A program made the position numbers and the translations under genes. A stretch of DNA of 64,000 nt. Source: Takakia lepidozioides. Its lineage: Eukaryota; Plantae; Bryophyta. The DNA lies in contig CM060731.1 in the NCBI GenBank assembly GCA_030704615.1, positions 52,452,001-52,516,000 of the forward strand, written 5' to 3'. The notes under the pieces were generated by a model. It was not told the origin of the DNA, did no database searches, and was given only the letters and a program-made list of their open reading frames with translations. Within the stretch, counting starts at the first letter, position 1. Each line of letters starts with the position of its first letter. Shown here in pieces: positions 1,642 through 46,000 of this stretch.

Positions 1642-1733
1642 GAGAGAGAGAGAAGACTGCGGTCGGTGGACCGGCGTAACTAAGAGCCACTTCGCCTTGC
1701 GGCTACTACCTCCTTTCGGGGGTGGGCCCTATT

Positions 1734-1763
1734 AACTCTATTTTAGCTAATTCTGGACTTTTG
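1734..1763 (+). repeat. Left terminal inverted repeat (30 bp)
   Basis: Reverse complement of 18965-18994 with 2 mismatches. Confidence 0.88.
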
Positions 1764-2541
1764 TTTGGTCCAAAAATAATACAAGATATATGAATAATTA
1801 TAATCTATAATAGAAATAAAGAGATATATCTATAATTATTTGACTATTTGTGCACTATATAACAACAAATTATGTAATCCTCCACACATTCTACGCAAAA
1901 ATACAAGTATGTATTGTGGTCTTAGATGAACATCCACTGCCAAGTTGACGTTCATTAAAAGGAATGGGAGGATGCAATGAATCAAACAATGATGAGAGCT
2001 CCGATATCCAAATTGACATACAGAAACAAATATGGAATAACGACCGAACCAAATATGAAACAATGATGGCATGTGATGAAGAGGACAACACGGAAAAACG
2101 AGTCTGTCGGGATCTGATTGATGATATGAAACATTCATATTTTATTTGAGATTATATCATTCAAGGCGATGGACCAACAGAAAAATGAACATCAACTGTC
2201 CATCCGTTCATGGACTTAATGCCATACAAGCCATAGATTCTGAAGGCATAGAACCGTTACGGCTTATACTAACTCATTAATAATACTGAGCCTCCTTCCA
2301 AACAGCTCGCAGTCAAGGCATGTGTCCGAAGACGCCTCCGGTTACCACAACCGCTTGCAACGGTCTCCGCTCCAGAGAACACAGAGATACATTGTCATCT
2401 GAAATGTTACTGCCAACTCTACTTGATGCCCTTGAAGCCTCCCGGCACGCCCGCCATTCTTCCCAATCACGCAGCTCTTGTTCCTCTTTTAGAATTCGTT
2501 CCTTGAATGTAACTGAGGAGAGGTGATGGAAATGACAAATG

Positions 2542-4700
2542 TTAGGCCCAAAGTGGAAGTTTTGCATATGGATATGTTGAGGTAAGAGTGCAAATGTAGC
2601 TGCAAAAGAATTGGAAAATCAAATTATGAACAAACAAGAGAAGAGTGGGATCCACGTGCCTACCAAGGTAATCAGGTTCCTTTTGTTGTGGGATCCAAAT
2701 ACGAGGATCAAGATATCTTCCATACCAGGCCCAGCAGGCATGGTCTCGACCAATAGGCTTATGAGAATACTTTGCCCGGATCTCGCTAATGTAATCAACG
2801 ACTGTTGAAGCTCCAGCCATCTCCGATATATATGGCCACACTGCTTTTGTCATATCATCCCGGTCACGCAATCCGTTTGGTGAAGGCTTGAATGAGAAAG
2901 GGAAGAATCCAGTATTTTGTGGGTTTCGCAGGCCTTTTGATGGCTCATCATCTACAAGAAGTATTTGCCCCTGCGTAGCAAACGGTCTATCAGGGTACCT
3001 GACAATAACACTTCAAATATCCTTCACGAGATATTTCATCCCGGGCCTGATATAACCAGTGGTATCCTTACAATCCTCAGCAGACCATATGAAGCAAAAC
3101 TTCTTCGCTATTTTCGTGGGGACGAAGCTCTCCAACATCCTACAAAGAACACCTCTATCAGCACATGACCAAATGGCCACGTGAAAATGCTTCAATTCAA
3201 GGTCCAGAAACTCCAAGACTCCAGGCCGAGGCACCACAAACGGTCTGTCAGGAACTTGAAGTGTCACATTCCTGAAACAAAATTTCTCCTTAAACAGTTC
3301 ACCGCCGGTTGGGGGTGGCCAGTAGCAGAAGAGTCCGTTGACACTCAAAATTAACAACATCCGTTTCCTCTTCCCCGCTGTTGCATGTAAAGGATGAGAG
3401 ACAAAGTTATCCTGAGCAGGTTAATCACACACTGACATTAGTGTTTCTGCCATGAAAATACCCACGACCCAGAATGATTGAGTGTATGGAAGATCAACAC
3501 GATTGTGCAGAAAATAGCAAAATACTGCACAATGTTGTGGGCTTGGAATGTTTCAAGAGGAGGGTGAATATTGCTAAGAAGAGGAACGTCGACTGCCAAG
3601 TGGAGGTTCAGGAAAGTACCTTGTACGGAGGGAAATTGATGAAGGTATCGTGCTGCATTCTCGCCTGTTGAGAAAAGATGGAGTTAATTAGTGCATAACC
3701 AAACGAACAGAAAAAAGAAGAAAGTGGAGAAATGATATCGAATAATACCGATGTCGCCTTATTGGAAAGTCTCGCTGGCGGGCTTGGCATCCCAATGGAC
3801 GTGTTTTGACGAGACCCCGGTATGTCCGAGGTATTCATTTTCTTCCTCAAGTCTGCTTTGTCTCTGACGAAAGACTTCTCTCCGGTGGAACCGATTTGTA
3901 GAAGAGATGGAAATGGTTTGGGTGCCCTATTCCGCTTCCTCGGTGCAGAACATTGCGCCAACACTGCAGGGTCAGGAAGCCCAGAAGTTGCAATTGAAGT
4001 TTCGTCCTTGTCCTCGTCGAAAGGATTTCGGAGAAGGGGAACGGAATGGAAATTGTCCCTTGAGCACTCCACATCCTGAAAGGAATTCACACGTAACGAA
4101 GGGATTACCTCGGAACAGATTTCCAATGAAGACGTCGTTTGACAGGAAAGTCACAATCCGCAGATTTTCTGGCCTGGAGTAAAACAAGAACATCAGACCC
4201 AGTACTAAGGAAAACAAAAGGACGAGTTAGAATTCAGATATAAGTAATTTTACCTGACTCCTTCTGATTTGGGATGTCCAAACTTCGTGTTGGGGAGAGA
4301 ATGAGGGAAGAGAGGCAACATTGTGCTGCGGAGCCGCAGCCTCAGCCGCGTCCTCAACGGATGACATTCTCGAGGTAGATTTCACACCATTGACACTTAA
4401 CACGGAGGGTGAGGATTGTAGAGTGAGGTCCACGAAATCCCTTGCACATTTGTCAAGTTGTCTTCCATCTTCGACATTCAATCCTAAACAATCCTGCGAC
4501 AGAACATCCTTTTCAGGAATGGACTGAAGAAGAGGGTCGTGCAATTGAAGGGAAGCCAAGTGCCTGGATGATGCTTCACCGTCGATGACAGAAATCTCAA
4601 CAGTAGTGTGAATGTTGTCCCTCTGTAGACGAATTTCTGATATGGAGGATTCCAATAGAGGTCCCGACAAGAAGTTGGCATCAGCAGCATCGCCATGAAC
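2542..4700 (-). pseudogene. Transposon cargo: FCP1/NIF-family HAD phosphatase-like domain (copy C) with upstream low-complexity exons
   Basis: The exon from 3377 reads KRMLLILSVNGLFC...VVPRPGVLEFL...HFHVAIWSCA...FIWSAEDC. After an in-frame TGA (3013-3015) it continues ILLVDDEPSKGLRNPQNTGFFP, which is the FCP1 layout. The first catalytic Asp is replaced by Ser. The upstream exons (~4700-4254, ~4174-3750) are inferred from GT/AG sites. Confidence 0.7.
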
Positions 4701-5004
4701 CTGCAGAAACGAACTTACAAGGTCAATGTACAGACACGGGATAACCTCCACTGCACAGTGGAGGTTGTCGGATTTGAAAAAGCGAGACGAGTTTCGGAGA
4801 AGGCCTGTATCTCAGAGGATCGGGATGGTATGGGGTGGAGAAATGCTTGGATGAGACTAGGAAATAACAAACAATTCCATGTCAATTCAGATTGAAAAGG
4901 AAATCACAGTACACAACAGTTTTTCTAGAAAACAATACAACCTATAAAAAAAAACCAATAAAAAATAAACATTGAATCACAGACGTGGTTGATCAATAAA
5001 ATCT

Positions 5005-5736
5005 TTATTTTGAAGCATCATATCGGATATTCCCGTAATTAAAATCATCAACATAATCCAGGAGAGGCTTAAACTTGGGATCGGTGGAAACATTCTGACA
5101 AGGCTTAAGTCCTATACTCTTTTCCCTGAGATAACTGGAAACGGTGTTAGATTTCTTCATTTCAAGCAAATATTTCTGAAGAACCTTCTGGAGATAGCAA
5201 GAGTCCGTCTCAACGGATTCAAATGATTTTAGAATCAGGCAGGATTCAGACGGGTTCAACACACACTTAATAGTTGAATCGTCAATAAGTAGAGTGTTAC
5301 TCAGGTTGTACTAACCACCAAATCTTTGCCAGACCGTCATCAATGGCTTCAAGAACAGACTCGGCGGGTCGTATCCTGATATAAATTGAGGGTGGACAAA
5401 AGTAGGACATGAGATACAATCTTCCTGAGACATAACGAATGCCGGCTGAGGAAGACCCCGAAGCATAAAGTCCAATATAGGCTGCAAGTTCTTGTACATC
5501 ATGCAGCTCCATATACCTAGACGGAAATGTTTGTTCAACTCTGTCCACATCTCACGATATTTTTCCCGCCTATAGACAAGTCGAAATCCAACAAGAGCTG
5601 GTATCCTGTAGTCTGTCTCGGATATTCGGGGGACACTGCAGCTCTTCTGGTGCTTCAAGACTTTGCACAAAACTCCATTCAGGTCAAAAATTATCAAGCG
5701 CAATCCTTTCGCAACTGGAGAAACTGGTGCTGCAAT
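5005..5736 (-). pseudogene. Transposon cargo: FCP1/NIF-family HAD phosphatase-like domain (copy B)
   Basis: LIIFDLNGVLC...VYRR...HFRLGIWSC...VMSQEDC...FLKPL..VW. After an in-frame TAG (5311-5313) it continues YNLSNTLLIDDSTIKCVLNP. This is the DLNG-type FCP1 homology domain. Confidence 0.8.
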
Positions 5737-5864
5737 CTGGGAGAAATTCATACATCCACTCAGGTGGTAATCAAGATAAACCAAGGACAGGATTGACATT
5801 GGGAGCAACGTCCACTGGACAGTCGAGGTTCATGAAAATCTAGAGCAGCCATCTACGTTTCAAA

Positions 5865-6653
5865 CTATTCCAATGAAGCGTCAAGAAATTTTTGTTTTCT
5901 AAGATAAACCTGCCACTGCAAATCCCATAGCAAGAGGCATTTGACCTTTGGGTCATTATACGGTGGACATCCTATGGGTTTTTCCACGTTGAATATATCA
6001 GCGTTTTTTCCGGATAACCGCAACTCTTCCAGGTGCGGTTTGAGTTCATCCAGAAGAAACCTGTCCTTGTATGGGTCGATGAGCGCTTTATATTTTGGAA
6101 GGAAGATACCGAGCGACTTTGGGTTCAAGTACGACTTATACATATTTTCTACAGTGTCGATAAGAAGTGTGTTTGATTTGTACGCTACAGGGTCGTCTAC
6201 AGTGAAAAGGTCGTAGAGACGTTTAAGATATATTGGCGCTTTCGGATATTTGGGCCATTCAGTACTGAACGTCTGTCTATGCTTCACGCAGTTCTCATTG
6301 CTGAATTCCCTGACCTTGTAAAACCTTATTCCAAACAAAGCCAGCCCTATATCCAGGACATTTTCTAACGGTCCAGTGTTCCAAAAGCAGACCTCAAAAT
6401 GCTTAAGGACCCATTTCAAGAAGTTGTCCAACCCATTTTGGACTGCAAGCTTGAATTTTCCAGCGCACACACAAGGATGGGTTGCGGGAGGGGATGTCGG
6501 GCCATCTCGGAGGTAAACCTCACCAAGGTAACCGACGTCAAGAACCAGGACGTAGTATCCTGGTCGAGATCCTTTCGGTCCCTCAGAGAGGCGATACCAA
6601 TCTTGTGGGTTCACAGATTTGTGATAGTCGATTGGAGGGTGAATCATATAATC
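5865..6653 (-). CDS. Transposon cargo: divergent FCP1/NIF-like domain (copy A)
   Basis: Open exon YYVLVLDVGYL...GLDNFLKWVLKHFEVCFWNTG...YLKRL...SNTLLIDT..YKSYLNP. The motif order matches copies B and C. Confidence 0.65.
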   Translation of the reverse strand, partial: DYMIHPPIDYHKSVNPQDWYRLSEGPKGSRPGYYVLVLDVGYLGEVYLRDGPTSPPATHPCVCAGKFKLAVQNGLDNFLKWVLKHFEVCFWNTGPLENVLDIGLALFGIRFYKVREFSNENCVKHRQTFSTEWPKYPKAPIYLKRLYDLFTVDDPVAYKSNTLLIDTVENMYKSYLNPKSLGIFLPKYKALIDPYKDRFLLDELKPHLEELRLSGKNADIFNVEKPIGCPPYNDPKVKCLLLWDLQWQVYLRKQKFLDASLE

Positions 6654-7162
6654 CTGTGGAATAACAGAACAATTAATTTATTTTGAAAAGAAGAAGAAGG
6701 ACAAAGAAGAACATAGCTAAGATGGTTATGAGGTGTATACCCGTTTCGGGGAGGGGTTCCGAATTTGCTGATGTTGCTGCTCGCTCTCTTTTCCTTCGCG
6801 GTGAGCAACGACCATCTCCGGCTCATCTCCTCCATCTCGCAACGTCGACTGGGCAGTGGAGGTTGTTTGTTTGACCGGATCAGTTGGGCTGGCCCTTATT
6901 GTTAAGTCCACCTGCCTCCTCACTGTTTGAGTCGCGATGGATTCTATCCGGGTTTGTGTGATTTCCTCCAATTTCCGTTCATGGATCTATATGAGTTTTC
7001 TTACCGTCAGTCACATGTAAATTTCAAGGTGGGAAATATTAAGATACAGATCAGGTATTGCCAAAAACACAACCAGAACACAACCAGATGCAATACACAT
7101 AATTTGTTCCATTTATAATGCTTAAAGACACCATAAATCTCCAGGTGTCATTCGTTACCTAC

Positions 7163-10100
7163 ATCCAAATTGACATGCTGGGAGACACTTTGAGAGCGAG
7201 TTGGGCTCTGAGTTCGGTCTCTGCCTCCGCCGTTTTTTCTTGGAGACGGGCTTTTAGTCCTGGCTCTGTCACCACTGTCCATTTTTGCAGGGGACGGGCT
7301 CTTAGTCCTCCCTTTGTGTCCACTGTCTTTTGTGGGACACGGGCTCTTTGTCCTTGCTCTCTCTACCCTCTCTTTCGCGGGAGACGGGGACATTGTCGCC
7401 GGCTCGTCCCCTTCTACAGGTTTGAACTAGTCGTCTGCACTCCCAATAAAATTGCCGCGCACCTCGATTGAGCTCGCCTCCGCACCCCTTGATGGTGAAG
7501 CAGGATTACTCTTAGTTCTCTCGCTTGAACTTGCTTGAATCACATCTAGGTGTCCAGCCTCCCAACGGTCTGCATTGTCACCATTGTGGCCCTCGTTGTC
7601 CCCGTTACCATCGATGCCCTCGTCCTCCTCTACGTGTTTGGAATGTCCGCCTCCTTCTTCCAAGTCTTCATCTTCCTCTTCCTCATCCTCATCATCGTCT
7701 CCACCGTCAACCTCTTCAGCAACATTGTCATTCTCAATTTGAAGCTTCTTAAAATTCGCTTCAACTTTTCCTTTGCAAAATTTTTTCTTGGTTGAGTGGT
7801 TGATGTCAAGCACTCGAATGTTTCTTGCCTGCACCCAGTCAGTAAAACAGAGGACGTGTTTAATGAAAAATGTAAAATTCGTATTTAAAATGCAAAAAAA
7901 AATTACACTTACATGAAGGGCGTACGTCAACATCACGCCTCCGAAGATGTTGACAGCGGACATCCTGTCTCGACAAAACAGGGAGGCCAAATAGTCATAT
8001 GTGTCAGCTCGTAGCTCATGATTATAAGTCTTGCACTCTTCTTCAAAAGCTGATGGCTTTTCAGAGGGCCCTTCCAGAATCGGCTGTATTGGTTCGATTA
8101 ACAGTACGGTGGAGATGTGCTCGTCCGGATTCTGCATCTCCTCAGATGTCGCTGGAAAAACATAGTCCAGGCACAGTACAGTCCGAGAGAAAGTCTTCGT
8201 GTTGTTTTTGTAAATATTTTCATACTCTCCCGGAACATAAAATCCCTGACAGACAAGATACGATGTTCTTCCGGGACCATTTTGGATGTAGGAGACCAGA
8301 TTGGCCGAGGACAGTTGCGTCGAGAAGAAAACAAAAGCACTCGTGTTCATTTTAGCCACAAAGGCCTCCAATATGTTCACATAATCGTTGGACTCAAATA
8401 CGATAGAGTCGTCTTCAGAAACTGTATTGACGAACACCATCGCTATGTTGTCAAACCATTTCTTCGGTGCGAGTCGCAGACGAGACTTGGCATTGGCGAA
8501 TTTTGTTTCTCCACCCATGATAGCGTAATGAGTCTTGAAACTCGCTGAAATAATCGCCATGGCATCCTCTCTATCCTCATAAGCTTTCTTGATGGAGGAG
8601 ACATACTTAACAAAAGCGGCCGTGAGTGGTTTTGTCTCCATGTTCATCTTGATCTTGCTTTGGATGTAATCCGTCCCCAGTTTGTCTTTAAATGTTGAGA
8701 ACTCTGCCTTATTGAAGTGGCACTTTCTCTTCACTTCACGCCACTCGTCCTTAGTGTACGGTTCCGTGCACTGTTTGCTCCTCTGAGGCCACCCCAACAC
8801 TTCCATCACATTGTCGACAATAAACCGGCGCATTTTCATGTCGTCTATGTACTTGTTCATGCCTTGAATTGATTTGTCTCGACCTTTGTAATCTCGAATG
8901 GTCAATTTCAGGTCCAGGATTTTCTGAGCAACTTTTATCAGCTGCCATTTGTTCAACCCTCGCAGCTTTGCGATAATAGATTTTGTGAGCTGTTGCTGTT
9001 CACCCTTGTACTGTATCCCAAGCGGGTCGAGTAGCTTTCCCTGCTCCTAGTTTTTGAAAACATCTTCCCAGATCTTCCAAACGTCGTCATCGCAAAGTAC
9101 CAGGACCATTGCCTCCTTAATGCTACCCATTTCTAGTATCAAATGACAGGCAAACATGAACTCCTGCACATTCATTCAGGGATAAATTAGTTGTCACTCC
9201 GACAACATAAGTATTCTTTAGCATAAAATGAATGTGAATAGTAGATGTTGATTCCATAAATGCATACCTTCCATTGTTTCGTCTCGGACTTTGTGGTGTG
9301 ATCGTTGTATTTCTTTGGCTTCCCCCTCAGGTTGAATAACATTCGCGCATGCGCAACTTTCTCCAGCATTGTTGTATCAAACTTTTGCGCCTTATTGGGA
9401 TCGTTGAGGAGTTTTGACAACTTCAGGAGCCTTTGTTCATCGGTAGACCATACAATCTTCGCAGGCCACTCCCGGTAGTACTCCTTCAGTCGCTGTCGGC
9501 AAGATCCTTGATAAGTTCCTGCTACAGTTAATGTAAAATGGGTGAGAGAGTTGAAATTGTGGGGACATATCCAATTTTGTAGTTCAACACCAACCTCCAC
9601 TGCCCAGTGGGTTAAAAGAGAGGTCTGGGAGGAAATGAAGTCCATTACCTTTGCTGCCACGATGGTGTGTTGTCCACCAATTACGAAGAACCTTGATACG
9701 TCCATCTCCTTCCATTGCTTCGGTCGCGATGAAGCAATCTTCTCGGGATTGGAAGAGTTGATTGGCGCAAGATACACCGGATGTTTGGAGTCGAACAAAT
9801 GAAGTTGGAAGAGTCGCGCTTTCACTTTGTCCTTATGCTTGATATTTAACGGCCTGTAAACCATGCTCCTTGGAGCTAGTTCTATCATGGAAACCTTCAC
9901 AAGGAAGGTACTCTCGAATCCGAATGGAAATACATCATTGTATTCCTTCGTGAGCCTCTCCTCCATCTTTTTGCATTTTTCCTTGTCAAAAATCTCCCCA
10001 GCTAGGTCTCTTGTTATCTGACATCAATGCTGGATCCTTATCCTCCTTCTGTTTCTTCTTTCATGCGGAAGTCCCGGCCTCATTGTCATCATTGCCGGCT

Positions 10101-10654
10101 GTCAACGACTTGCGTTTTCCCTTCTTCGGCTTTGATGCTTCCTGTAGTGCTCATTTTTTTCGAATGTTGTTCCCCATTGCGTGCAGAAGATCCAGAAAAA
10201 TACTCCAGGCCCTCGACAAACCTACGTCTGTAAATACTGAGCCCTCGTCTGGAAATCTAAAACCCAGTGCAATGCATTCACTCATCAACGACTTGTTCAG
10301 ACGACCCACCTCCACTTTGAAACCAAACGTCCTGGGGGTTCTCGCATCCTCATGCAGGAACAAAACCAACATCGGGTTTTCCTCTTCAGATTCAAGCTCT
10401 ATATCGAGAGCTTTTGCGTATTTTAAGTCTGTTATTACTCCAAGACTTCTGTAATGAAAAGACAGTTTGTGATCAGGAGGTGTACCGACAGGCATGATGC
10501 CCCAATCTGTCACCTCTGGGTTAAGCTCAAAAATAGCGGTGTGCTCAGTTTTGAAATGTGAGGACTTCCGGCATACGAATGCGCCACAAATATCTCCAAT
10601 CAATCCCGGGACGCAATCTGGTGGTGTAGGATGTCTTCTGTTACAACCAAACAC
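7163..10654 (-). pseudogene. Transposon cargo: ParB-like domain + helical region + degenerate beta-class amino-methyltransferase-like fold + acidic and Ser-Pro tail (spliced, several nonsense or frameshift lesions)
   Basis: ParB/Srx-like segment IELAP...YRPLN...V...FFVIGGQHTIVAAK (ORF 9187-9966). The C-terminal segment IAMVFVNT...ELRADTYDYLASLFCRDRMSAVNIFGG..LTYALH|ARNIRVLDIN parallels the DPPY...KP..L..LI..FS..GD.VLDPFxG...GR..IG.E order of beta-class MTases. GT-AG introns lie at ~9648-9519, ~9268-9164 and 7912-7829. Confidence 0.55.
7240..7400 (-). repeat. ~45-48 bp coding tandem repeat (RTKSPSP-type peptides)
   Basis: ORF 7148-7393 reads MSPSPAK..RARTKSPCPTK..GRTKSPSPAK..RARTKSPSPRK..RTQSPTRS. 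Confidence 0.8.
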
Positions 10655-13600
10655 AAATTCATTAGATAATCAAATAACAGGATCTCTCTTACTAGCATCC
10701 ATCATTCCAGAAATGAGAACCTCCACTGGACAGTGGAGGTTTGTATGTACGAGTCTTTCTATATGAAATGGGAAATCCTCCATATTTTACAGATGTTGAA
10801 GAATTTTTTTTTAATGAAAATGAGGCTCAGGAGCCATTGAGTACATCATCCTGAAACAGGACTAATCTACAATAGAAATCTTCGAACCTAATTCGTCCAA
10901 AATATACTAAGAAACTTCTTGCACTATATTCAGACGATTCTAGATTATATACCCAAGAACTACATAATGCTCCTTCTTATCTCTCTGAGTGTATCAGGCG
11001 AATAGTCTGGAGGGGTATATTTTCAGGATCCGGTGATACTATCAGGAGACGCAGGGGAGTATCCTAGAGATCCGGAGACGTCCAATAGTTCCAGGACTCC
11101 CCCGCTGACTTCAGGTGTATTGTTCGGAGATTCGGATGCGTTCCGCGGGGATTCTACAGTCACATTTTCGTCATTGACAGACACTTTGTTCAGCTCGGTA
11201 GACCCCCAACTGGATTTTTCATCTGGTTCCGAAACACCATGTTTTTTATCTGGATGGTCCGCTTCCATCACATCTACCGAACACCGTCTCTTGCTCCAAT
11301 TTAATCTGGCTGTCTTGTACTCATCGTCAGACACCGGTTCCCCACCCTCGTTCCTCTTTCTCATTCTGACATAAAAACTAATCAGAGTGTGTAACTGGCT
11401 GACCCAAAGAAATATCGAACTTCCACTGGGTAGTGGAGGTTCCCAATTATCGTATCCCAGTCTCGTTGGAAAGTATGTGTCACACTTACAATGTTACACA
11501 TATGATTCCATCACTCGCTCCCACATCATCTCAAACTGATTTCAATTTTCCCGTAATTATCCGATTTCGTCCTTACTTTAAAAAATGCCTTTCAGCTTTT
11601 GCATACAGAATTCACGCGAACCTCCATTGGGCAGTGGAGGTTCCAGTTTCTGGTTGCTCATGTGCATGACATGGGTCTACGAATACTCTACACTGGACTG
11701 CACGAAGCCTACTGTTAGCATATGTCTACTGTAGAATACAAATAGACTAGGCTATCGTGGTTTTTCAGAATTGCCGAATTCGACATAATTGGATAAGAAA
11801 TGAAAATTTCCATTCAGAATCGAATTTGAATGGGAAGAAATGCATCAACTAACGCTGGATTTGGGGATCAAGAAAACGGTTGAGAAATAAACATCCGAGC
11901 ATTTCCGAAACCACTGTCCTCAATAAACCACCACAATGAACAAAACAAGCAATACAACCAACACGGTAATCTCCCGCAACCCTAAACCATTACCCTAATC
12001 GACTAGAACAAGCACACACAAACCCAATTGCACACAAAACCACCTTACAAACCATCGGTGAATTGAAAAACAACAGTGAAGCAATGACGCAGGAATGCAC
12101 TGAAGCACAGAATGGAGCAGGAGTGAAATGAATTGACAGAGAATGAAACAGCATTGAAGCAAACAACGAAGCAAACAATGAAACAGAAACCTAATGTGCA
12201 CTAAAGCACGGACTAAAGCACTGAAAACAATGCAGTGCAGCAGAGAAAGAAGCAGGATCCAAACGAATTGAATCTTGAACAGGCCACATGAATCGAGAGC
12301 GGGCCAACACAAAACGTGAAACAGAAGATGAAAAGAGGGAGTTTTTAATGCTGTACCTGCTTGTGCCGACCATTTTGGTGCCCTTGCAACCACAGTCCTT
12401 CGTTTGATACTCTCTTCCGCACCTCCGCCTGCCGGTAATTGCACTGTGCTCTCGCCTCTACACTCGTCAATCTCCACTCGCCACTGTCCGGTCTCTCCTC
12501 CCCGCTCTTCAAATTTTGCCTATTTCACTCTCTCACCTTTCACCCTCTCCTCTCTCTGCACTCGTCCAAGTCTGCTCTTTCTCTCCACGCTCCAGTGTCC
12601 AGTCGCTGCAAAACGAGCTCCAAAACTCTTCTCTTTCACGCTCTCCTCTCTCAACTGTTAAGCTCTCACTCGCGCAGCGCTTACGCGTAGAAAATGGGAA
12701 GCCCAAAGGCTGGGCTCAAAGAGCGCACCCCTTATAAGCGACCTTCAAGGATGATCTGAACCATCGCCTCCGTCTGAAATCGAACGGTCGCGCGGCCCAA
12801 ATGGATGTTCTGCCCCATCCACGCAAACTAACATTAATACTGTCCATCCACACAGATGAAATTAGTTCAACTTTTGTTCCATGAATGCACACACGATTGG
12901 ACAGATGACTGGATAGACGAATGAAAAAAGGACGAAATGATTGTAATGACGCCATTGGTCAGACTCTGCAACCCTCACGCTTACAAAAATCTTAAAATAG
13001 ATTCGAAGCCAACAAACCTTAACCCACGCCCCAAACGCACATGTGACCACCCACGTGACACGCCTAGGCAGTCGTTTCGAACTCAATCTGCCAGAGGACA
13101 CAACGCTGTACCTACGGATTCGTCACACTATATAATCATTGTCTCATATTGAGCCGTCCACAATTACTTTCGGCTGTTAGCCGCCAGACGTCAATATTCC
13201 CTGACAGACATACGGCTTTAAGGATAGTAGATGGCCCCTCGTGTCGGGCATTCCTCGATTTAAGGTCCAGAGCCACCATAGGGATTGCCCATTTATCGAG
13301 GGATACCCGACACGAGGGGTCCATCCCTACATTAAACATGTGCAAGCAAGCAAGGCACGACAGAACATTCCGCACACCTGTAATGCACCGCCCTCGCTGT
13401 CCAATGCAATGCGCCGGCATGTAATGCCCCGCCCTGCCCAAGTGTTTTATTCTAACTGCACGATAAAAATAAACAGAACAATCTCAAAGTGCTTTATGGT
13501 TCACCTCCGGATTCCTCCCAGCTAATTATAATGATCGATTGTTAATGTATAGTCCCGAATTAGTTGTGGTGATTAGCCGCCTGACTTCATTTCTCCAGGC

Positions 13601-14842
13601 CACTTGTCAGAATCGACATCCTTCACGCTTATTCCAGAGTCTGCTGTCAGAGCCGCACGATAATGATGCCAGACTTGTAGTCCTACTAACGTACAAGTAC
13701 GATAGAATTCAGTCTGATCGTGGCCGTTATCGTTTGTTCCATAATTAATGTGACAATGGCTATTGTCAATAAACGGAAAATTGTGCACACTTTCAATGAA
13801 GCCGAGATTTCACGAGTTGAAATAAGCCGTTCGATTCCGCCTTAATCCACGGTGGCCACAATCGATCCGGGAGAGAAAGCATACCACACTGCCATTGGAG
13901 CGATTCAAAGATGAAAGTTACATGTCACCTCTATATAACGTCCGAATCCACACAACACCAACTTCCCACTTTGAACCTCTCACTTGCTTCTTTTCTCTCA
14001 CGCACCTCTCTGGACATCCTGCACCTCTCTGGACAACGTGTACCTCTTTGCCTGTCCTACACCACTCTGCCCATAGGGTGCTTCTGAAGCAGCCTCTGAG
14101 TCTCTCTCTGCTTCCTTAGTCTCAGGTGTCAACTGCACATTTCTCACGTAGGATAGTATGATACTCAATTTTTTGTGTACTCTCCATGTGCACCAACTAA
14201 ACTTGCTTTTGTTTGTCTAAAGTTACTCCCAAACCTCCACTGGGCAGTCACCACATTATTATTCATCCATCCATAGAATCACTTTTTCATCTACAGAGGG
14301 CTTCTTCATTATCCATTGTTCATCCATGTGGTTGATTTCATCAACAGATATCATCCAACCTCCACTGCCCAGTGGAGGTTGGCATTTGTGACTTCATCTG
14401 ACAGTTCCGATAGATGTAGTCTATATTCTGCCCTCATACTCCAATTTAATTCCAATTGTTTTTTATCAGTCCCAGTGTAGATCCAAACATTGACTTTACT
14501 TTTTCAATCCATATTGTTTTCTCATTCAAAACCGTCGAAAAAGTTATACTTAAAGTTTCTCCTTTCGGTGGCAAGACTTTCTTTCCTTCAGTTAATCTTC
14601 AGTCCAGTAATAGGATTTTACTGGACCTCCACTGCTCAGTGGAGGTTACTAACTTCATGGGGTTCCAAGTAGGCCAAAGGGTGTCGCTTCCTGGATCTCC
14701 TTCAGTTGTTGCCTCAAGAGATTGCCTGAATGTTTCTGGGGATGGAACTTGCCATGGACACCACTTGTGTTCGTCCACCATTTCAGTTACCCTGATCTTT
14801 TGTGATGACGCATTCGGCTCCTGTCCTCTGCCTTATCGACAG

Positions 14843-16953
14843 ATGGATGCTGACACATTGAAGGAGGCGATTGGGACTCCAGTTGTGTGGGCGATTGGGA
14901 CTCCAGTTGCTGCCAGTATTTTGATTGGAGAAAAACCTTGGCAATTCGTACTGCATTTTGGGGTTCGTCATTCGATGAGAGGAGAGAACTTGGATTGAAT
15001 GTTTCAAAACGACTTCACATTATGGATGGGCCATCGCGCAGGTGGTATGTTACGATAGAAGGTGTTAATGTTTGTGAGAAAGCATGGTGGATAATATACG
15101 GAATTGGAAGGTCAACGTACATGGAGTACAAAAAGCTCAGTAAAGAGGGCTGTTTGTCATCTTTCCACGGAAATCGTGGTGTCAAGCGGCCGCGACCAGG
15201 GACACTCCAGGCAGAGGGGAACATTATGTCCATTATCAATGCCAATACTGACCTTATGCCTCACAAAACATGTTGCATTGGAGAGGGACGTCAGGATACT
15301 TTGAGAATTTTGCCTCTCGAAATGAACTGGAAGAGAATTCGAGAGGAGTCCAACGAGACGACTTTTATTCGTTGTCCCCGCTACAGACGACGAACAAGAT
15401 GGTCTCCGGATTGGGTCAGTTGCCTGTCTCATTGACAGGAATGGTTACGCACGGACACGGAGATGGAGCTTACGCTCAATTTTCCCTTGAGTTCTGGAAA
15501 GACAATTCAAACTTCACAATTGGGTCGTTGGCTCGGTGCCTGCGGCAACTGGAAAAGCCGACATGCCGGGAATCCAGGAACATTTTTGACACTGAAGTTC
15601 AAAATGATTTTTTTGAAACGCTCATGAGAGGTAAATCGAGATGTTTGGAGGCTCTGAAACCCTGCAGGCCGCACGATAAACGTGGTGCTCGACCACTTCC
15701 TAGATGACTTTATTTGCAGATGGACAACTCCTCCAAGGACAATAAGAATAGATGGATGCTTGCTTTCCTATCCCTCCTCACTACCAAAGATGTCTTTGAA
15801 GAGATCCAGCTTGGTTTTCTCATGGTCGAGCACACCCATGAGGATATTGACGGATTCTTTAGCTATCTCTCGAAGAAGCTAAAGGAACGCAACACCTACA
15901 TTCTTCCGGATTTGATGAGGTCATTCATGATCTCCCAAGATATGCAATTCATTCCTCAAATCACACAGGAGGATCCCGACTTCAAGAAGTTTGTTAAGGG
16001 TTGTATTCATGATGGAAATGAGGCTTTGGTGGGGATCTCAGAGATGCACGTCTTTCGATTTTTTAAGGATGCGGATGGCTGGCCCGTTATGAAGTACAAG
16101 AAGTCAGTTACTGATTTGGAGTGGCTTCCTACAAACTCCAGCGTTAAGATGTGGAAGTCCAATCCTGATGGGACTCCATATCTCCCTGAAGGAGAATCAG
16201 ATGCCGTTCCAAGAAGACCAATATGGGGAGTCGGGGACGACTCCTCAGAAAAACAGTCATTCATAAAAAATGGTATTAAGAAATACAGAGATTTTTGGAC
16301 CAAAGGAATGTTGCTTGACGATCATTACTGGGGTGTGATGGAACAATATGACCAATATTGGGGAAATATTCTCGCCGAACTTGATAAGCCAATGCAGGAC
16401 ATTCCGGATTGTATTCAGCTTCTTGAGGGATTTTGGCTGAAAACAAATTGGTCCTCAAACCATCGGAGGGATGGCATCCAGCCATAGATACTGGAAGATA
16501 TGGAAGATGAGGATGAAGTTCCAGAACCTTACTGTGGCCCTAGGTGTGAGCGTCCAAGGATACCCTTGAATCCATTCAAGGATATTGAGAAATGATTTTT
16601 TGTTGCTCGTTCGCCCTCATGACCCAGCGACGTGCCCGGTCTAGATGGGAATGGCAATTTCAGATGTCATCTGAGAAAGGGAAGATCCTAATTTTAAGAA
16701 AGTGAAGGTGGAGTGGTGGAGACCGAAGAAAGGAGGTAACCCCTCAGACTTTGAGAGGTACAAGGACTGTTGGTCAAAAGTTTTGGAGTACAACCCGTCA
16801 GATCCTGCTCAATGGATCCACGTGAACAATGTCGTATGGACAATGCCGCCACGAAAAAATACGACAAGAAATAGCACCAAGAGAATTACAGCGGTGGAAG
16901 CAGTGAAGGCGTGCGCGAATTTGGAGGTTGCTAACCTTCAGCCAGATACCTGA
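14843..16953 (+). pseudogene. Sola-like (DUF7869-type) DDE/D transposase, decayed
   Basis: Motifs are N-terminal CCQ..R..F...EG..VCEKAW..IYG; LTGMVTHGHG...NFTIGSLARCLR; LPR*LYLQMDNSSKDNKN..LAFLSLL...F..I.LGFLMVEHTHEDIDGFFS; C-terminal VKVEWWRP. Lesions include an apparent deletion or frameshift near 15355 and stops at 15705, 16485 and beyond. Superfamily assignment is from memory of the motif. Confidence 0.8.
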
Positions 16954-17319
16954 AGGTTTCCTTCTTGCGAACCATTTTCCATCCATGGACTAAATGTTGA
17001 GGTTATTTCCGGTCTTTCATTTTAAGATATAAATTTTTTTTTACGCTTATTTCCCTTCGTGTTTGTGTTGGGTGATCCTTCCTGTTTTCTTTTTCTGTTG
17101 CAATGAACCTCGAGTGGGTAGTGGACGTTCATCTATTTTCTTTCTGCCGTGTTGGACTCTGCACTGCTGTATATTCTGTTCATCTACATATATTCGTGAC
17201 ATGGGGGATTCTGGCTTACAAAACAGACAATGCACAAAAAAAATAAAATGCTGGCACAACCCCTGGATTCTTTCTTTTCCAATCCGGTCTAAATATTTTT
17301 TTGCAATGTCTCGTTCTAG

Positions 17320-18510
17320 TGAGTGCGAGTCTTCTATATTTGTTTGTCCATTTATACCTTTACCATCACCTCTAAATCCTTACCCTTCGTTTTACCCTTC
17401 CCTTAACCTTTCCATAGGCTTAAGCCGGACACTTAGTACCCTAAACTATTACTCTTACCATATACCAAAAACCTTTGTGTACTCCCATAAATCCAAACCC
17501 TTACCCTGGCCTTAATCCTTACCCTAAGATTAAGCCTGACACTTACTACCTTAAGCCATTACTCTTACCATATACCAAAAACCAGGTTAGTGTACTACCC
17601 TACTTACACTCCAAACCAAGTTATTGTACTACCATGTGTGAGTCTTCTCTATTTGTTTGTCCCTTTGAACTACCCTAAATCCAAACCCTAAATCCTTACC
17701 CATTCCCTTACCCTGGCCTTAATCCTTACCCTAAGCTTAAGCCTGACACTTACTACCCTAAACCATTAGTACTCTTACCATATACCAAAAACCAGGTTAG
17801 TGTACTACCCTACTTACATTCCAAACCAAGTTATTGTAATATCATGTGTGAGTCTTCTATATTTGTTTGTCCCTTTGAACTACCCTAAATCCAAACCCTA
17901 AATCCTTACCCATTCCTTTACTTTGGCCTTAATCCTTACCCTAAGCTTAAGCCTGACACTTACTACCCTAAACCATTAGTACTCTTACCATAATATACCA
18001 AAAACTAGGTTAGTGTACTACCCTACTTACACTCCAAACCAAGTTATTGTACTACCATGTGTGAGTCTTCTATATTTGTTTGTCCCTTTCTACCCTAAAT
18101 CCAAACCCTAAACCCTTACCCTTCCCTTAATAATCCTTACCCCAAGCTTAAGCGTGACCTTTAGCACCCTAAACCATTACTTTTACCATATACCAAAAAA
18201 CCTTAGTGTAGTACCCTACTTATAATAAACTCCAAACCTTATTGTACTACCATGTTACCTCTTGTAAAATTTGTATCATTCTCTTAATGTTTTCTTTAAT
18301 TTTCAAGTTGGATAACGTATGATAGAATGATTACATGGATATCAAATTCCCCTTACATTTTTACATTCTACAGAGGTTTAGAGTTGTCTATATTTGTTTC
18401 TCTCTTTCTATCCTAAACCCTTTAAAACCCTAAACCCTTCTCCGAGTCACCACAAACTTGGACCTTATTGCACTTAATATATCTAGTTACACCCCAAACC
18501 TTATTTTACT
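17320..18510. repeat. Subterminal ~210-bp tandem array rich in telomere-like CCCTAAA/CCCTAA motifs
   Basis: The unit marker agtcttct(c/a)tatttgtttgtcc occurs at ~17328, 17641, 17851 and 18064, and degenerately at ~18385. Units contain taccctaaatccaaaccctaaa. Confidence 0.85.
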
Positions 18511-18964
18511 GCCCTAGTAGGTCATCTTCCTAATATTCATGCTATTTTAATATTTTACTGTCCTTCTCACACCCAAAACATCATTCCAATGGCATTGTCT
18601 ATGAATATTGTGCTTGTCAACATGAAGATTCAATCAAAATTACTATCAACTTATATCAAGTATGGTAGAGTACTATGAGTCTATCCCATGTTCAATTCGA
18701 CACATTTGTTTATCGTGATTGTAACATAATGTAATATTACATCATTCGACTTCCCAGTCGACGTTCAATGAATTGTTGAGTTACACTGCAACTTCACAAG
18801 CACTTCAATGTCAAATGGACATCTTATATGTTACATTTTGAAGCAAATATGACATCACTTGTAATTTCACAAAGTTCAATCACACATTACTATCCAAGAT
18901 ATTATTAACAATTTTTGAATTAATTTTAATTCAAATACATATTAAGTTTGGTCCAGATTTAAGC

Positions 18965-18994
18965 CAAAAGTCCAGAATTAGTTAAAATAGGGTT
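18965..18994 (-). repeat. Right terminal inverted repeat (30 bp)
   Basis: Reverse complement of 1734-1763 with 2 mismatches; followed by TATT. Confidence 0.88.
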
Positions 18995-18995
18995 T

Positions 18996-19561
18996 ATTCC
19001 TCAATCCAAACAAATGTATTAGTATACCCTCCGGAAGGTTGTGCTTGTCAATTTAGAATTGGCAAGAACAACCTTCAAAAGGGTACTCTAACATGTTTGG
19101 ATTGATCAATTTTTAACTTGACATGAACAACCTTCTGGCAGATATCCATCAAGCATGACCTAATGGTAAACACAACCTTCCGTAAGGTATTAAACATAAT
19201 TGTTTGGATTTTATGCAATAAAAAATGATAGAAACAATCTTCCGGAGGGTACACCGATAAGTTTCAATTGAGCAATTTTAAAATTAACAAGAATAACCTT
19301 TCAGGAGGTATCCCTCAAACATAACTCAATGATAGAAATAAGCTTATGTAAGATAAAAGTATTTTTTTGGATTTTACTCCATTGAAAAATTGACAAGCAC
19401 AACCTTCCGGAGGGTATAATAACATGTATGTTTGGATTGAGGAATTTTAAAAACTAGGATTAAACTTTCGGCAGGTACCCATCAAACAAGACTCAATGAT
19501 TAAAACAACCTTATGTAGGGTAAAAATATTTTATTTGGATTACATTCAACCTGAAAATGAG
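18996..19561. repeat. Right part of the AT-rich foldback repeat (internally palindromic)
   Basis: 18997-19055 is the reverse complement of ~19386-19444. 19431-19561 is the reverse complement of 1510-1640. Confidence 0.7.
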
Positions 19562-20035: not shown

Positions 20036-20889
20036 ACCTATATAAACGCCCAACACTCATTTGCACCTTTGTGTACAGTGGGTCCACAAGATGGATAAAT
20101 AAAATAAAATAAAATAATTGTGCTATGAGCATACACTATGGAATGGGTTGCCACTTGGGCACAACTTCTTTATGTGTTCCATGGATGAATAAAGATATCT
20201 ATAACTATTATCAGATGAGTTTCATTCATTCGTGATTTTTTACGACATGGCTACCAAAAATTCGCGAGCAATTTGAAGCAGTACATACACCTTAAAGACT
20301 GAAACCCCTCTCAAAATTTCCCCTGAATGGCATATCCAAATGACATAAAGGTTTATATAGATCCGGCCGCATCATGTAGTCCACCTATCCCTAAATTTTC
20401 AAATTTGTTGGCTCTGTCCTTTCAGGGCAGAGACTTTGCATCACGTTGAAGTCAATGGAGAAAATGTGTCAATGGACCTTACACCGTGTCAAGAGTATGA
20501 TTGGTCTAAGAAAGCTTTTAAGTATAACCTGTGGCAGCTTGTCAACATTGTTGCTTCAATAGACAGAGCCTCTTGCGGTTTGCGGCTTGTAAGAATAGTT
20601 CTCCGGATATCTCCCTTGCTGTGAGCTACAAAACAAAAAATGGCAGGGGTTGTCTTAAGCCTCAGCCTTTTTTTTTTGTGTTTTTTTTTGTGGAACAGGG
20701 ACAGTGGCCCTGGCCCTTGTTGTTTTAGTTTTAGAGAGCAGGGGACATCTTTATTATATATAAAAGAAAACTTGGGCATGTAGTCACTAGTAGTCATCCT
20801 TTAAAAATATAAAAAATATAAAAAATATAAAAACAAGTTTTTTCTCGAAACGTGACCCTGGTGACAAGGCAGACCATCCAGCTGTCCTA

Positions 20890-21118
20890 AAATAGTGTCA
20901 CAGCAGCCCTCTGTTTGGGGGGGGCTCACCCACCATTAACCCCTCTGAACCAAGGGTGGTCCCCTGAAATAGTCTCACAGCAGCCCTCTGTTTGGGGGGG
21001 CTCACCCACCATTAACCCCTCTCAACCGAGGGTGGTCCCCTGAAATAGTCACACAGCAGCCCTCTGTTTGGGGGGCTCACCCACCATTAACCCCTCTCAA
21101 CCGAGGGTGGTCCCCTGA
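20890..21118. repeat. 3 x 76-77 bp tandem repeat
   Basis: The unit aatagt..cacagcagccctctgtttggggggctcacccaccattaacccctct.aacc.agggtggtcccctga starts at 20891, 20968 and 21044. Confidence 0.9.
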
Positions 21119-22618
21119 CTGGCACCCGCTGTTTTAACTGTCGGGGGCCACCCACCGCCTTCGTTGCGAAACCTTGGGGCAGCGGCTATGGCTACATACT
21201 TAATTCGGATGCCATTAAATGATTTGTGCTCTTCCAGCAGCCATAACTTTCTTCCCTAAAGCCAAGGAAGCTCAGCAGAGCTCTCCGTTTGGACTAAGTT
21301 ACAATCTTTCTGTTGGTGGCTCTTCAATCGGATCTGGATTCAGAAAGACATGGCTGTTCGTGTATCACATCTTCAAAGGTGCATTCAAGGTTGGTTAGCA
21401 AATCCGAAATTTGGTGAACAAAAGAAAACACGAAACTCAAATATCAAACTGCGGACAAAATGTTAGACATTGCAAGAGTGTGATGCATGACACGGAAGCG
21501 GAAGAGAAGAAAGAAAGAGACGGGGGTGCATTGTAGCAGCTAAGTTTGGAGGAGGGAGTGCCCTCAGAATTTTTGAAATGGCTGCTGCAGCCTGCAGTTG
21601 TATGGATAGGTAAGGGATGACGAGGGAGGCACGTACGGGGCTCAGGGGAATGTTGGATTCCTCGTACCCGAGGATCGGCTGCACACTAAGTTAAGCTGGA
21701 ATGCAGAGGCATTGCACTGCACTGGATCAGCAGCCGTCGAAGCTTTGACCTGCATATGCATTCCTGCTGCGCATCTCCACGTGCCTCATCTTCGTTTGGT
21801 TCTCTCTGGCAACTGTTCAGAGCCTCACTGTTGAATGCCAGAAGATTGTCAGGGTGAGAACTAGGGCAAAGTGAAAACCCGGAATTTTCACTGTAGCGAT
21901 CTCGGCACCTACAATGTCTGACTCCTCCCCGCCTTCCCCCTGCAGCTATGGGGGCATTCGAATCTTTAGGCCTGGACGATCTTGTCTCTCCGAACTCTCC
22001 AGTACCACCACCTTGTCTGTAATGTCTTTAACAGCTGTTCGCACTTCTATCTCCCCCTGGTTGCTTTTTCTGCCCACCCTTGTTCTTCTTTTTGTCTCTC
22101 CCTGTCGTCTCTTCCTCTTGCTGTCCTTGGTAGACAGCTTGTGAGCAATTACGTTTGGTAGATCTGACGTCAGAGCTCCAACCATCTACCATCCTTGTCG
22201 CGCAGAAGTCTAACCTTGCGTCTTTCCTCATACTACATTGCATCGACATTCCGCCTGTTTCTGTAAAACCATCTCCTCGCGACTGAGCTTATAATAAGCT
22301 TGACCTCCCCTGCTGAAAATAAGGGAGGAGAACTAGAGGATGGCCGTTGGAGCTTGGCAGATCATGGCATTAGTCATACGTTCTCCAATCTCAGAGATGC
22401 AAGCCCTTACGGCAGTGTCTAACTTACAGACAACTTGTACGTGGTTACTGAGATTGTAAGGGAAAGTGGAGATCTACGAAAGCCTGCCAATATCGTAGAC
22501 AGACCATACCAGAAGGGGGAGAAGAATATAAATGGCGTTATTTGCGAAATGGTGTTGCATCGGGACAGGACGAAAGTAAGAGTTTTCCTTCAGCCCCTCA
22601 CCTCTCTTTCATTGTATC

Positions 22619-43008: not shown

Positions 43009-46000
43009 ATGTCTAGAAAGCGAAAGGCAGCTGGTGTGAAACAGCTCAAGAAATTGGGGAGCACAAAAGGAGGGGTTCACATGCCAGGCAAGAGGTCGCG
43101 TTTCTTCTGCTCCCCTGATGAGTGCCAAGTAATAGCTTCGCAGGATCCTATCTGCCAACGTGTTCCGGTCCTCTCCATGTATGGGTCAACTTCACAAAAA
43201 ACAGTTCCGGATATGTTCAAGTCTCAACGAGACAAGAAGAGAAGGCCACATGGTTCTGGAGCCGTCATGCAGGTAGAGCCTTCCAGCAGTGTTGAGAATG
43301 ATTGTAGCAGCCATGCCCAAGTTCTTATGGAGAAAGAATTTGGGAGGGATGCTGATTTGGGAGTGCGGCCAGTGAGGGAGTTCAGTTTCTTATCTTCAAA
43401 GAGGTCATGTACGAATGCAACCAGAGAAAGGGTGGTGTATGCATCAAAGGATGTGGAAACTCATAGTGAGGCAGCCACGGGTCAATGTAGTAACAGAGGG
43501 ACAGAGAGCAAGCCGGGCAAGAGACCTGGATGTGGAGACGTGCAGACTTCAATGAGATCACAACAGAGGATAAGAGACATGCTTAGAACACAGCCTGATT
43601 GCTCTGAAATGCTACAGTCCTCCCAAACAAATTATGCTCATCATGTGCTGCAAAGACCAAGCAATAATGATGAAGGTCTTCTTACCAGAAGGGAGGCTGC
43701 GGGTTTGGCGTTAGAGGAGGGTTTTGTTTCAGAGGATGTTTCTTTCACCTCAGACAGAAGGATCAATGGCTGCACTAGTGGAAATTTTGAGGGAAGCAGC
43801 CTGGCAAGGCACTCAGGTTGCCTCTCATCTCTGGAGAGAGATGGTGCTTGGATTGGGAGAAATGATGATACCACAATTGGACAGGATGAGGTGGCTTTAG
43901 TGGATTGCAGTTTGCCTTTCAGGAGCGAGTTGGCTCAGACACACAACAGTGGAAATGCTGCAGAGAACAGTACCACTAGAAGCATTCTCAGCCTTTCTTA
44001 CAGCAATGGTGGCCAACAAGGAGCAATGAAGTTCTTACAGCCAAAATCCTTGAAGACAAATGTTAGTAGCTACAACAACAATTCCAATCTGCAAGATTGG
44101 CAGAGTCTCAAGAGGGAAAGGCTACAAAGAGTGAACTATGGCCACCATGATGGGGAGCTGCTGAGGAAAGAGAGGGCAGGACGGGTGGATACTAGTCTCT
44201 TGGCTACTGAGAATCTAAAGAGGGAAAGTTATGATACAAATGGAGCTGGTTCTGATGGGGAGCCTAGTACAAAAAAGGACAGCAACCAGGAATCTAATGC
44301 CGATTTCATGCGTGGAGTAACTGTCTTGAGAAAGATTGGGCAGGGTGTTGAATTTGATCGCAATGGTGAGGGATGCTTGATTGCAGAGACAGGAGTCACT
44401 TGCAGGAACAAAGGGACGCCAAAGAGGGAAGATAGTGAATTTATCAGTGCTGGTGAAGTTCTGAAGAGAGAGAAACTCAAAGGTGTCTCCTTTGGGGGTG
44501 AAAGTTTGAAAAGAGAGAAAAAAGAAAGCGAAAGAACTTTTTCAGTGGGCAATGAGAGGCTGGAGAGAGTCTTTGGTAACCAGTGTTGTTCAGGTTGTAA
44601 GGAGGAGGAAATCTTAGAAAAGGAGACCATAGGCAAACGCACTGCTGGTTCCAAGAGTGGTCAGAATGCCTCTTTAGACCTTGACAGGTGGCCTACATGG
44701 TCAGAGGAATTTTCACACTTCACAAGGTCGAAACATGACAAAAGATCCAACACTGGCCCCAATGCGAAGGCTGCACTTGAGGCCCTCAAATCTGCTGCCT
44801 CAAGGGGACAAATTCTCCACATTGAATGCATGCCGGCCAGGTATAGTATGCAAATGGTAGATCTAGTGAAGCCGATTTTCTTTTGACCCAGGCCATATTC
44901 GTATTCAGATATTCGGTCTAATCTGCATCAGTTCCATTAGCACATGGATATATTTACAAGGTTTTGGCTATTTCACAGCTGTTCTGATAGTCTTGCAGCC
45001 ATAACTGGAACATAAACTTGTGAGCCAGGGGTGGTCAAAGTTAATAGTGGGGTGGTAAGCACGGCCAAAGGAATAGTAATCAAGCTAGAATCCTTCGAAA
45101 GTCTCAGGGATATAGCTTGAGTACCTTAGTTCTTGATGGCCATAGTCCTATGTCATGTTGGTTTCAGGTGTCTTTGCTGGGCTGGTGCCCTTGTTGGGGT
45201 CTCCATTCCTTGATATTTGTCCTTTGTGCGGTATGGGTGAAATGCTGTTGGGCCTAGACAAGCCAAGTATGCGGAGTGTGACTACAAGCTACCAGCGAAG
45301 CTCCAGAAAGTTCTTGGCAAGAGGTAACTGCTGATGCATCCCTTTTGCTTCATAAGCATGTTTCTGAAGTGCAGATTGGCTCATCCCCCAGATATCTGTG
45401 TAATCTGTGTGTTTGATCACTTCGGGCTTCAAGACTGGTATATTGCTTTGCTTAATTTTCCGGTCATCCCGGTTATTGCAGGGGTATAAATCAACTCTAT
45501 GCCCACCAGGCTGAAGCTCTCAACATGGTTTTCAATGGTTCCAGTATAGTAGCAGCGACCCCCACAGCCTCTGGGAAAAGCATGACCTACACAATCCCGG
45601 TAATGTGAGCATTCCTCTACTTCAACAAAAAGTTGTCGATGCAATTCTGACCTTTTTTAATATCTCAAAAGAATTTGTTCCTATAGCTCAACAGGCGGTG
45701 GCATTTCTTACCACCAAGTGCTTTTATTGCTTAGGTTTTGGCATCTGTAATGGGAGGAAAAGATTAGACGGAGTTTACATCTGCTGACTGTCCCACCGGG
45801 TGTGACAGATTCTTGAGGAATGCACCCCATCCTAACCCTCCTGGAGCTCATTGTGAGGTTGCTTACCATTGTATAAGTTAGAAACAGAAATTCCAGCTGT
45901 GCTTTAACTTTCCCAATCATTGGGGAGGCAGGGATAATAAGGCCAAGGCAGTTTTTGTCATGGTTGGCAGGTATTGGATGCTTTAATGAAGGTGCCAAAA

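Follow-up and report, generated by a model that had tools for sequence, protein, structure and literature searches.

The 21.5-kb Sola1 transposon Sola1-1_Ec32 of Ectocarpus carries an opposite-strand gene for a ParB-like/N4-cytosine-N6-adenine methyltransferase (N4C-N6A MTase), for which binding and modification of the element's own DNA have been proposed (PMC12477816). In Bostrychia, Plavaka (EnSpm) elements with the accessory genes PAG2 and PAG3 have a ParB-like gene (PAG3) beside tandem inverted-repeat arrays, and parS-like self-binding was proposed there as well (bioRxiv 2025.02.11.637652). VANC, the accessory protein of VANDAL elements of Arabidopsis, recognizes and binds motifs that are specific to its family and that lie within its own element, in intergenic parts and introns (PMC5735166). 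Sola1 is listed in Repbase for the moss Physcomitrella, whose element is the best hit of the Ectocarpus transposase. Here, we analyzed a 64-kb stretch of the Takakia lepidozioides genome (contig CM060731.1, positions 52,452,001 to 52,516,000; hereafter the window) and found that the 17.3-kb element at 1734-18994 is a decayed, dead copy of a giant multi-copy Sola1 DNA transposon of a land plant. Its cargo gene codes for ParB-like, MTase-like and NIF domains that have lost their usual catalytic motifs, and its non-coding parts carry copies of a palindrome that differs from one family of relatives to the next.

The ends of the element are those of a Sola1 transposon. As had been recognized in an earlier note on this DNA, it has 30-bp terminal inverted repeats (TIRs) and is flanked on both sides by TATT, a 4-bp target-site duplication (TSD). 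The TSD is AT-rich but differs from the AWWT of insect Sola1, and the TIRs are identical at 28 of 30 positions and begin with AAC. The sequence preceding position 1734 differs in two contigs of run X7. Because the inside of the element is covered by many divergent contigs of one DNA run, far more than the left flank, the family must be multi-copy. AAC-starting termini and a 4-bp TSD are also found in Sola1-1_Ec32, likewise a giant Sola1 with an opposite-strand ParB-like and N4C/N6A-MTase gene, but its TIRs are 282 bp long (PMC12477816).

The transposase on the plus strand matches DUF7869 (E 9e-32), and its second and third catalytic motifs (Asp) align with those of the curated Sola1-1_Ec32 transposase, in agreement with the Sola-like assignment made earlier. 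The window copy is dead because the region of the first catalytic Asp, present in the related loci L002 and L029, is deleted, and because the frame contains stops and frameshifts. One or two small beta-rich modules are present at the N-terminus of the transposase (window 14657-14995; L029 2300-2888; L002 8446-9500); they gave no Pfam hit, and we take them to resemble Tnp1/DUF8039-like domains.

The transposase lies head-to-head with a spliced cargo gene, the divergent layout that had been proposed. The cargo exons were searched individually, using as a scaffold the natural full-length homologue P0063 (locus L004), a 2264-aa protein encoded by one open frame on an intronless contig, in which ParB and MTase-like parts belong to a single protein. 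The ParB-like, MTase-like and NIF parts of the window were recovered with hidden Markov models (HMMs) built without the window sequence. All domains named in the earlier note were thus retrieved, the ParB-like domain with a family model, the MTase fold by way of one homologue and the three FCP1-like domains by Pfam and HMM. The window gene is broken by the in-frame stops listed in Table 1, among others. Between relatives, however, amino-acid change is far below silent change: for ParB, dN is 0.05 versus a dS of 0.96; for the MTase-like part, pN is 0.19-0.32 versus a saturated pS of 0.73-0.77; and for the NIF part the ratio is 0.19. This purifying selection on all three parts indicates that the cargo is a maintained gene of the element and not captured debris. 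The cargo is also present in related elements (L029, L036 and the ERZ25073694 family), and no relatives were detected in the viral contigs, prokaryotic genomes or plasmids searched.

The two ParB-like exons (9268-10023) match the family HMM at E 8e-39, and the family comprises about 50 divergent proteins. For one member, a model based on an alignment of 24 sequences (A2) has a ParB-CTPase fold (pLDDT 91). ParB, Noc and KorB came out on top in Foldseek (E 4e-4), with PadC also among the best structural matches, and comparison with KorB gave a VIA Z of 8.5 and a root-mean-square deviation of 2.8 over 93 aligned residues. Sequence searches of PDB, PHROGs and NCBIfam revealed no ParB or MTase match. 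The locus thus shares a ParB-CTPase fold and palindromic sites with ParB/parS, KorB and Noc, but differs in that no ParA-like match was found among the scanned frames of the element, that the gene is a spliced plant gene, and that the GxxR arginine of the P motif is replaced by Ser or Thr. In nearly all members GQHS/T aligns with the G-x-x-R of plasmid ParBs, and mutation of this Arg to Ala abolishes nucleoside triphosphate binding in the ParB folds tested (PMC12704722). The CTP-driven loading and spreading that the earlier note had invoked is therefore doubtful. A mostly mollusc cluster of uncharacterized eukaryotic proteins was the second-best structural match to the ParB model in the ESM Atlas (TM 0.64), and animals may therefore have related ParB-like genes.

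Fusion of ParB to an N6N4-MTase is typical of phages, and the survey describing such fusions mentions neither plants nor transposons (PMC12704722). The MTase-like exon of the window matches its HMM at E 3e-16, whereas direct searches with this exon gave no matches. For homologue L018, N6_N4_Mtase (0.93) is the family of all ten best family-bearing Atlas hits, and alignment A3 has the motif order of beta-class N4C/N6A enzymes, with the catalytic motif before the S-adenosylmethionine (SAM) motif. Both motifs are altered in every member examined, DPPY/SPPY being replaced by DFRxIP or less and FxGxG by NxFGGxK. No confident three-dimensional model was obtained for this part, the single-sequence model of the window exon reaching a pLDDT of 47.

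The three NIF domains were detected by Pfam at E 4e-5 to 1.5e-3 and by HMM at E 1e-9 to 1e-19. None of the copies examined has DxDxT, the first motif being DVGY, DLNG and SVNG in the window and DLNG or DMNG in relatives, so that phosphatase activity on the C-terminal domain (CTD) of RNA polymerase II (Pol II), as had been envisaged, is doubtful. Hence, the ParB, MTase-like and NIF domains all lack their usual catalytic motifs, yet they are under purifying selection in relatives. In Sola1-1_Ec32, by contrast, a working MTase is predicted, and its paper mentions neither phosphatase-like domains nor internal palindromes (PMC12477816); the plant protein exceeds the algal one in length, carries one to three NIF domains, and has ParB and MTase folds that both look disabled. 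Without their usual catalytic motifs, the domains are likelier to bind or scaffold than to modify DNA or dephosphorylate.

One 24-bp palindrome, AACCTCCACTG-NN-CAGTGGAGGTT, is repeated within the element: 11 copies are found when 4 mismatches are allowed and 12 when 5 are allowed, besides a half site at 14232. The repetition noticed earlier thus stands, but the count is 12 full sites and one half site rather than about 14. Within the window, the palindrome occurs only in the element: none was found in the 46.7 kb outside it, and 0.0 were expected by chance. The exact motif is absent from the JGI metagenomes. The copies lie close to the two ends, ahead of each gene and within introns of the cargo, and 12 of the 13 sites are non-coding (P about 6e-4, with an approximate exon model).

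Relatives from other plant-derived assemblies have the same layout and a near-identical TIR, and in two more samples the transposase and the cargo lie on one contig. In L029, an intact-looking Sola transposase stands head-to-head with ParB, MTase-like and NIF exons, and a palindrome of its own occurs 32 times, clustered upstream of both genes and within introns. L036 and L037 combine the layout of L029 and the same TIR with a different palindrome, and in ERZ25073694 a three-NIF cargo and a Sola transposase, on neighbouring copies, have a third palindrome and the TIR in common. The ParB motif alone retrieved 15 GC-rich metagenome loci, some of them of the same family. Of these, 13 have their own palindrome, placed upstream and in the introns that follow the ParB exon and the MTase exon; the other two are contigs of 1.4 and 1.9 kb. 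In total, 14 distinct palindromes were counted, confirming that subfamilies have palindromes of their own. Only a central YG-N1-3-CR is common to them, and the outer arms vary, whereas the TIR core barely changes across families. Motif similarity tracks the ParB tree (rho 0.85). Where protein identity has fallen to 56%, 8 of 9 half-site bases are still retained, suggesting that the motif is under selection.

Several families coexist in one assembly, as seen in L008, where two main-family copies enclose a piece (11830-17059) of a second family that has ParB exons and a palindrome of its own. L005 contains remnants of a CACTA transposase (DUF4218, Transposase_21; 16500-18550) at 2-4 kb from a decayed ParB/NIF cargo; CACTA as a second carrier of the cargo was rejected as unproven, since L005 and the Sola locus L031 have matching palindromes. 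In L028, bacterial genes are fused to a piece of cargo that contains four palindromes, most likely through a bacterial-plant assembly chimera at a contig end.

Many of the palindrome copies form short tandem arrays with a spacing of 45-90 bp, as they would if they were by-products of local tandem duplication or sites for a host factor, with no reader encoded by the element. We consider this very improbable, given that single copies recur in separate introns, that symmetry and core are kept across the 14 motifs and that palindrome positions are highly conserved between copies. The central YG/CR core present in every motif could also reflect an MTase fold that is active with a non-canonical site and that, as has been suggested for the algal proteins, marks the element as self by writing N4-methylcytosine or N6-methyladenine on the palindromes or close to them. 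Its family assignment in the Atlas and the conservation of DFRxIP and NxFGG in most relatives would fit such an activity. We nevertheless rate it the least probable of the readings considered, as the canonical DPPY-type and FxGxG-type motifs are altered throughout and even the DFRxIP form is lost in the window and ERZ25073694 families.

The behavior of the two kinds of sites bears on the identity of the reader. That the TIR is conserved implies that the transposase has kept its specificity in binding the ends, and the palindromes, with only YG-N1-3-CR in common, are unlike a TIR-derived transposase site. A fast-changing, perfectly symmetric second site in non-coding DNA implies a second, dimeric reader, for which the cargo protein is the natural candidate. 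The transposase might instead bind the palindromes through its variable N-terminal region, for autoregulation or activation, leaving another job for the cargo. Palindromes do cluster upstream of the transposase in L001, L002, L029 and L031, transposases can activate cognate copies, and no locus cleanly separates transposase and cargo. Still, this explanation appears rather improbable to us: the palindrome varies without resembling the conserved TIR, the sites recur within cargo introns, and in the red alga inverted-repeat arrays accompany the ParB gene on an unrelated (EnSpm) transposase. The arrays thus go with the ParB gene, which favors the cargo over the transposase.

We therefore lean, by a small degree, towards a cargo that gives family-specific activation or anti-silencing through the palindromes of its family, in the manner of VANC and TnpA. 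In intact relatives, the transposase would act on the little-changed TIR, while the second of the two head-to-head genes would produce one large protein composed of an N-terminal domain, a ParB fold, a helical linker, a beta-class amino-MTase fold, a disordered acidic linker and one to three NIF/HAD domains. As a dimer, this protein would bind the palindrome of its own family through either the MTase fold or the helical region next to ParB, both in every cargo intron and at the site clusters that precede the two genes. It would serve as a scaffold or decoy and not as a modifier, with the Pol II CTD or phosphorylated transcription factors as the probable partners of the NIF domains. The outcome would be family-specific activation of the element or its shielding from silencing. 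As protein and palindrome diverge together, each family would serve only itself.

The layout matches that of VANDAL/VANC and Spm/TnpA of Arabidopsis, in which an accessory protein and family-specific non-coding motifs also diverge together (PMC5735166; bioRxiv 2026.08.24.746577). Those systems differ in having Mutator or CACTA transposases, non-palindromic motifs of 8-10 bp, unrelated proteins, and an activity that is demonstrated, where ours is inferred. No VANC or TnpA Pfam hit was obtained in the cargo pieces or homologues, a direct comparison with VANC or TnpA not having been made. The CpG observed/expected ratio (o/e) is 0.68-0.80 in the element versus 0.27-0.65 in adjacent host DNA.

Several observations weigh against activation or anti-silencing by the cargo. 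High CpG o/e is non-specific, as ratios of 0.70-0.74 also occur in pieces of nested retroelements from other assemblies, and CG sites account for 7 of the 19 listed transitions in the window copy, so that this copy was probably methylated. All loci with enough flank fit linkage of all three parts, and co-inheritance alone thus explains the match of motifs and tree. A helix-turn-helix was sought behind the ParB N-terminal domain, where a helical region is in the right position, by hhalign profile comparison, which was insensitive and missed even the positive control. Evidence for expression is thin, with contigs of two runs presumed, by guess, to be RNA covering NIF fragments at about 85-92% identity. 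Finally, transposases themselves can be sequence-specific activators (bioRxiv 2026.08.24.746577).

Along the cargo, the sites follow one another at intervals of about 1-1.7 kb, and both promoters are flanked by sites. This arrangement, the unusual length of the element for a Sola1, and the lead of KorB, Noc and ParB among the fold matches would also fit a cargo that binds the palindromes in a mechanical or repressive way, bridging or compacting the 17-30 kb element for end synapsis or repressing both divergent promoters. End synapsis is the classical role of TnpA, and KorB represses promoters on IncP plasmids. We regard this as unlikely, though a serious contender, because the sites are not concentrated at the ends, the nucleotide-binding arginine of the ParB fold is replaced and the NIF domains suggest transcription rather than synapsis.

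The features of the element are compiled in Table 1.

Table 1. Features of the Sola1 element and its target site (window positions; the cargo gene is on the minus strand)
Feature	Position	Strand	Remarks
TSD TATT, left	1730..1733
Left TIR	1734..1763	+	30 bp, AAC start; core common to relatives in three other assemblies
Palindrome copy	1929..1952		4 mismatches; 3' non-coding region of cargo
Probable last cargo exon	2316..2512	-	Open frame only; no homologue found
NIF/FCP1-like HAD domain 3	2670..3414	-	First motif SVNG, no nucleophile Asp; in-frame stop 3013-3015
Palindrome copy	3585..3608		Predicted intron
Low-complexity Ser/Asp-rich linker exons of cargo	3620..4701	-	Approximate, open frames only
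Palindrome copy	4743..4766		Perfect; predicted intron
NIF domain 2	5008..5780	-	First motif DLNG; in-frame stop 5311-5313
Palindrome copy	5807..5830		Between NIF1 and NIF2
NIF domain 1	5911..6654	-	First motif DVGY
Palindrome copy	6841..6864		Only one within a putative coding stretch
Acidic, Ser/Pro-rich linker	7160..7850	-	45-48 bp tandem units
Helical linker and beta-class amino-MTase-like domain	7913..9163	-	Catalytic and SAM motifs degenerate; in-frame stop 9047-9049
ParB-like domain, second exon	9268..9523	-
Palindrome copy	9592..9615		5 mismatches; intron splitting ParB domain
ParB-like domain, first exon	9648..10023	-	P motif GQHT
N-terminal cargo exon	10154..10669	-	No Pfam hit
Palindrome copy	10718..10741		Perfect
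Short Ser/Pro-rich frame	10960..11364	-	YSP-type units (weakly CTD-like), stop-broken; not found conserved in relatives
Two palindrome copies (11418, 11619)	11418..11642		Upstream of cargo
Strong hairpin	13229..13325		Spacer between the two genes; z = -8.7
Half site (14232) and two palindrome copies (14357, 14624)	14232..14647		Just upstream of transposase start
Sola1/DUF7869 transposase pseudogene	14657..16953	+	Internal deletion over first Asp near 15360; stops, frameshifts
Palindrome copy	17106..17129		4 mismatches; downstream of transposase
Subterminal tandem repeat	17498..18222		3.5 x 210 bp, telomere-like, CCCTAAA-rich
Right TIR	18965..18994	-
TSD TATT, right	18995..18998

The frame at 10960-11364 was considered as a conserved CTD-mimic open reading frame and rejected, as relatives give no support. 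The spacer between the two genes holds strong hairpins in L029, L030 and L002 as well, and in the ERZ25073694 family these are long inverted repeats that contain copies of TIR-like sequences and of the palindrome. The hairpin of the window is a possible source of small RNAs; in the Rfam search, no family rose above its threshold. CCCTAAA-rich subterminal repeats span 17380-18450 of the window, with comparable runs upstream of the cargo in L005, and might recruit telomere-repeat-binding factors.

The insertion point of the Sola1 element is the edge of a very high-copy 92-bp repeat (1642-1732), probably a short interspersed element, that is GA-rich at one end and bordered by a duplication of 15 bp. 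The repeat also lies inside contigs of the two presumed RNA runs. It has no Rfam match and its folding is not unusual. The 15-bp direct repeat (1627-1641 and 18996-19010, 14 of 15 positions identical) brackets the 92-bp repeat and the insertion together, which indicates that the flanks were once contiguous. These flanks (1530-1636 and 18996-19535) are part of a different repeat, whose units are inverted and spaced at roughly 166 bp; it probably resembles a miniature inverted-repeat transposable element and hosts both insertions. Elsewhere in the window, a receptor-like kinase gene and a frame resembling pentatricopeptide-repeat (PPR) proteins are land-plant-like, a 76-bp tandem repeat is present in three copies at 20886-21141, and a frame at 50396-51241 resembles the C-terminal part of the ORF2 protein of long interspersed elements. 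Host genes at 44000-58000 show strong CpG depletion (o/e about 0.3), suggesting gene-body methylation in this plant.

The earlier note had taken this combination to be undescribed in eukaryotic cut-and-paste elements. That part of the claim falls for Sola1 with a ParB/MTase gene, known in Ectocarpus, and for ParB with inverted repeats, known in Bostrychia. The Bostrychia elements differ in their transposase superfamily, in the fusion of ParB to a 2-oxoglutarate oxygenase with the MTase as a separate SET fusion, and in arrays that are adjacent rather than intron-spread, no family-specific motif series being described in the searched text (bioRxiv 2025.02.11.637652). In the literature searched, which did not include the original Sola description, we did not find a land-plant lineage, loss of catalytic motifs under selection, NIF domains or intronic family-specific palindromes. 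The basic design was thus proposed in algae in 2025, and the plant lineage adds a variation on that proposal. Tentatively, and as a broader picture that we hold with less confidence than the role of the cargo in activation or anti-silencing, a widespread plant Sola1 lineage may have turned a phage-type ParB-MTase fusion without both catalytic centers, together with NIF pseudo-phosphatases, into a retargetable dimeric reader of family-specific palindromes of 18-26 bp, one that uses the Pol II CTD machinery to protect the element against silencing.

With at least 14 distinct long palindromes available as candidate sites, and with many of these next to a cargo gene whose open frames are long (e.g., L029), the idea of self-recognition becomes open to cross-binding assays. 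If true, the families would constitute a natural library of protein-site pairs, and proteins that read 20-bp sites with evolvable specificity could serve as plant epigenome tools. If the cargo counters silencing, it would represent a further anti-silencing system, independent of VANC and TnpA and made from bacterial or phage parts.

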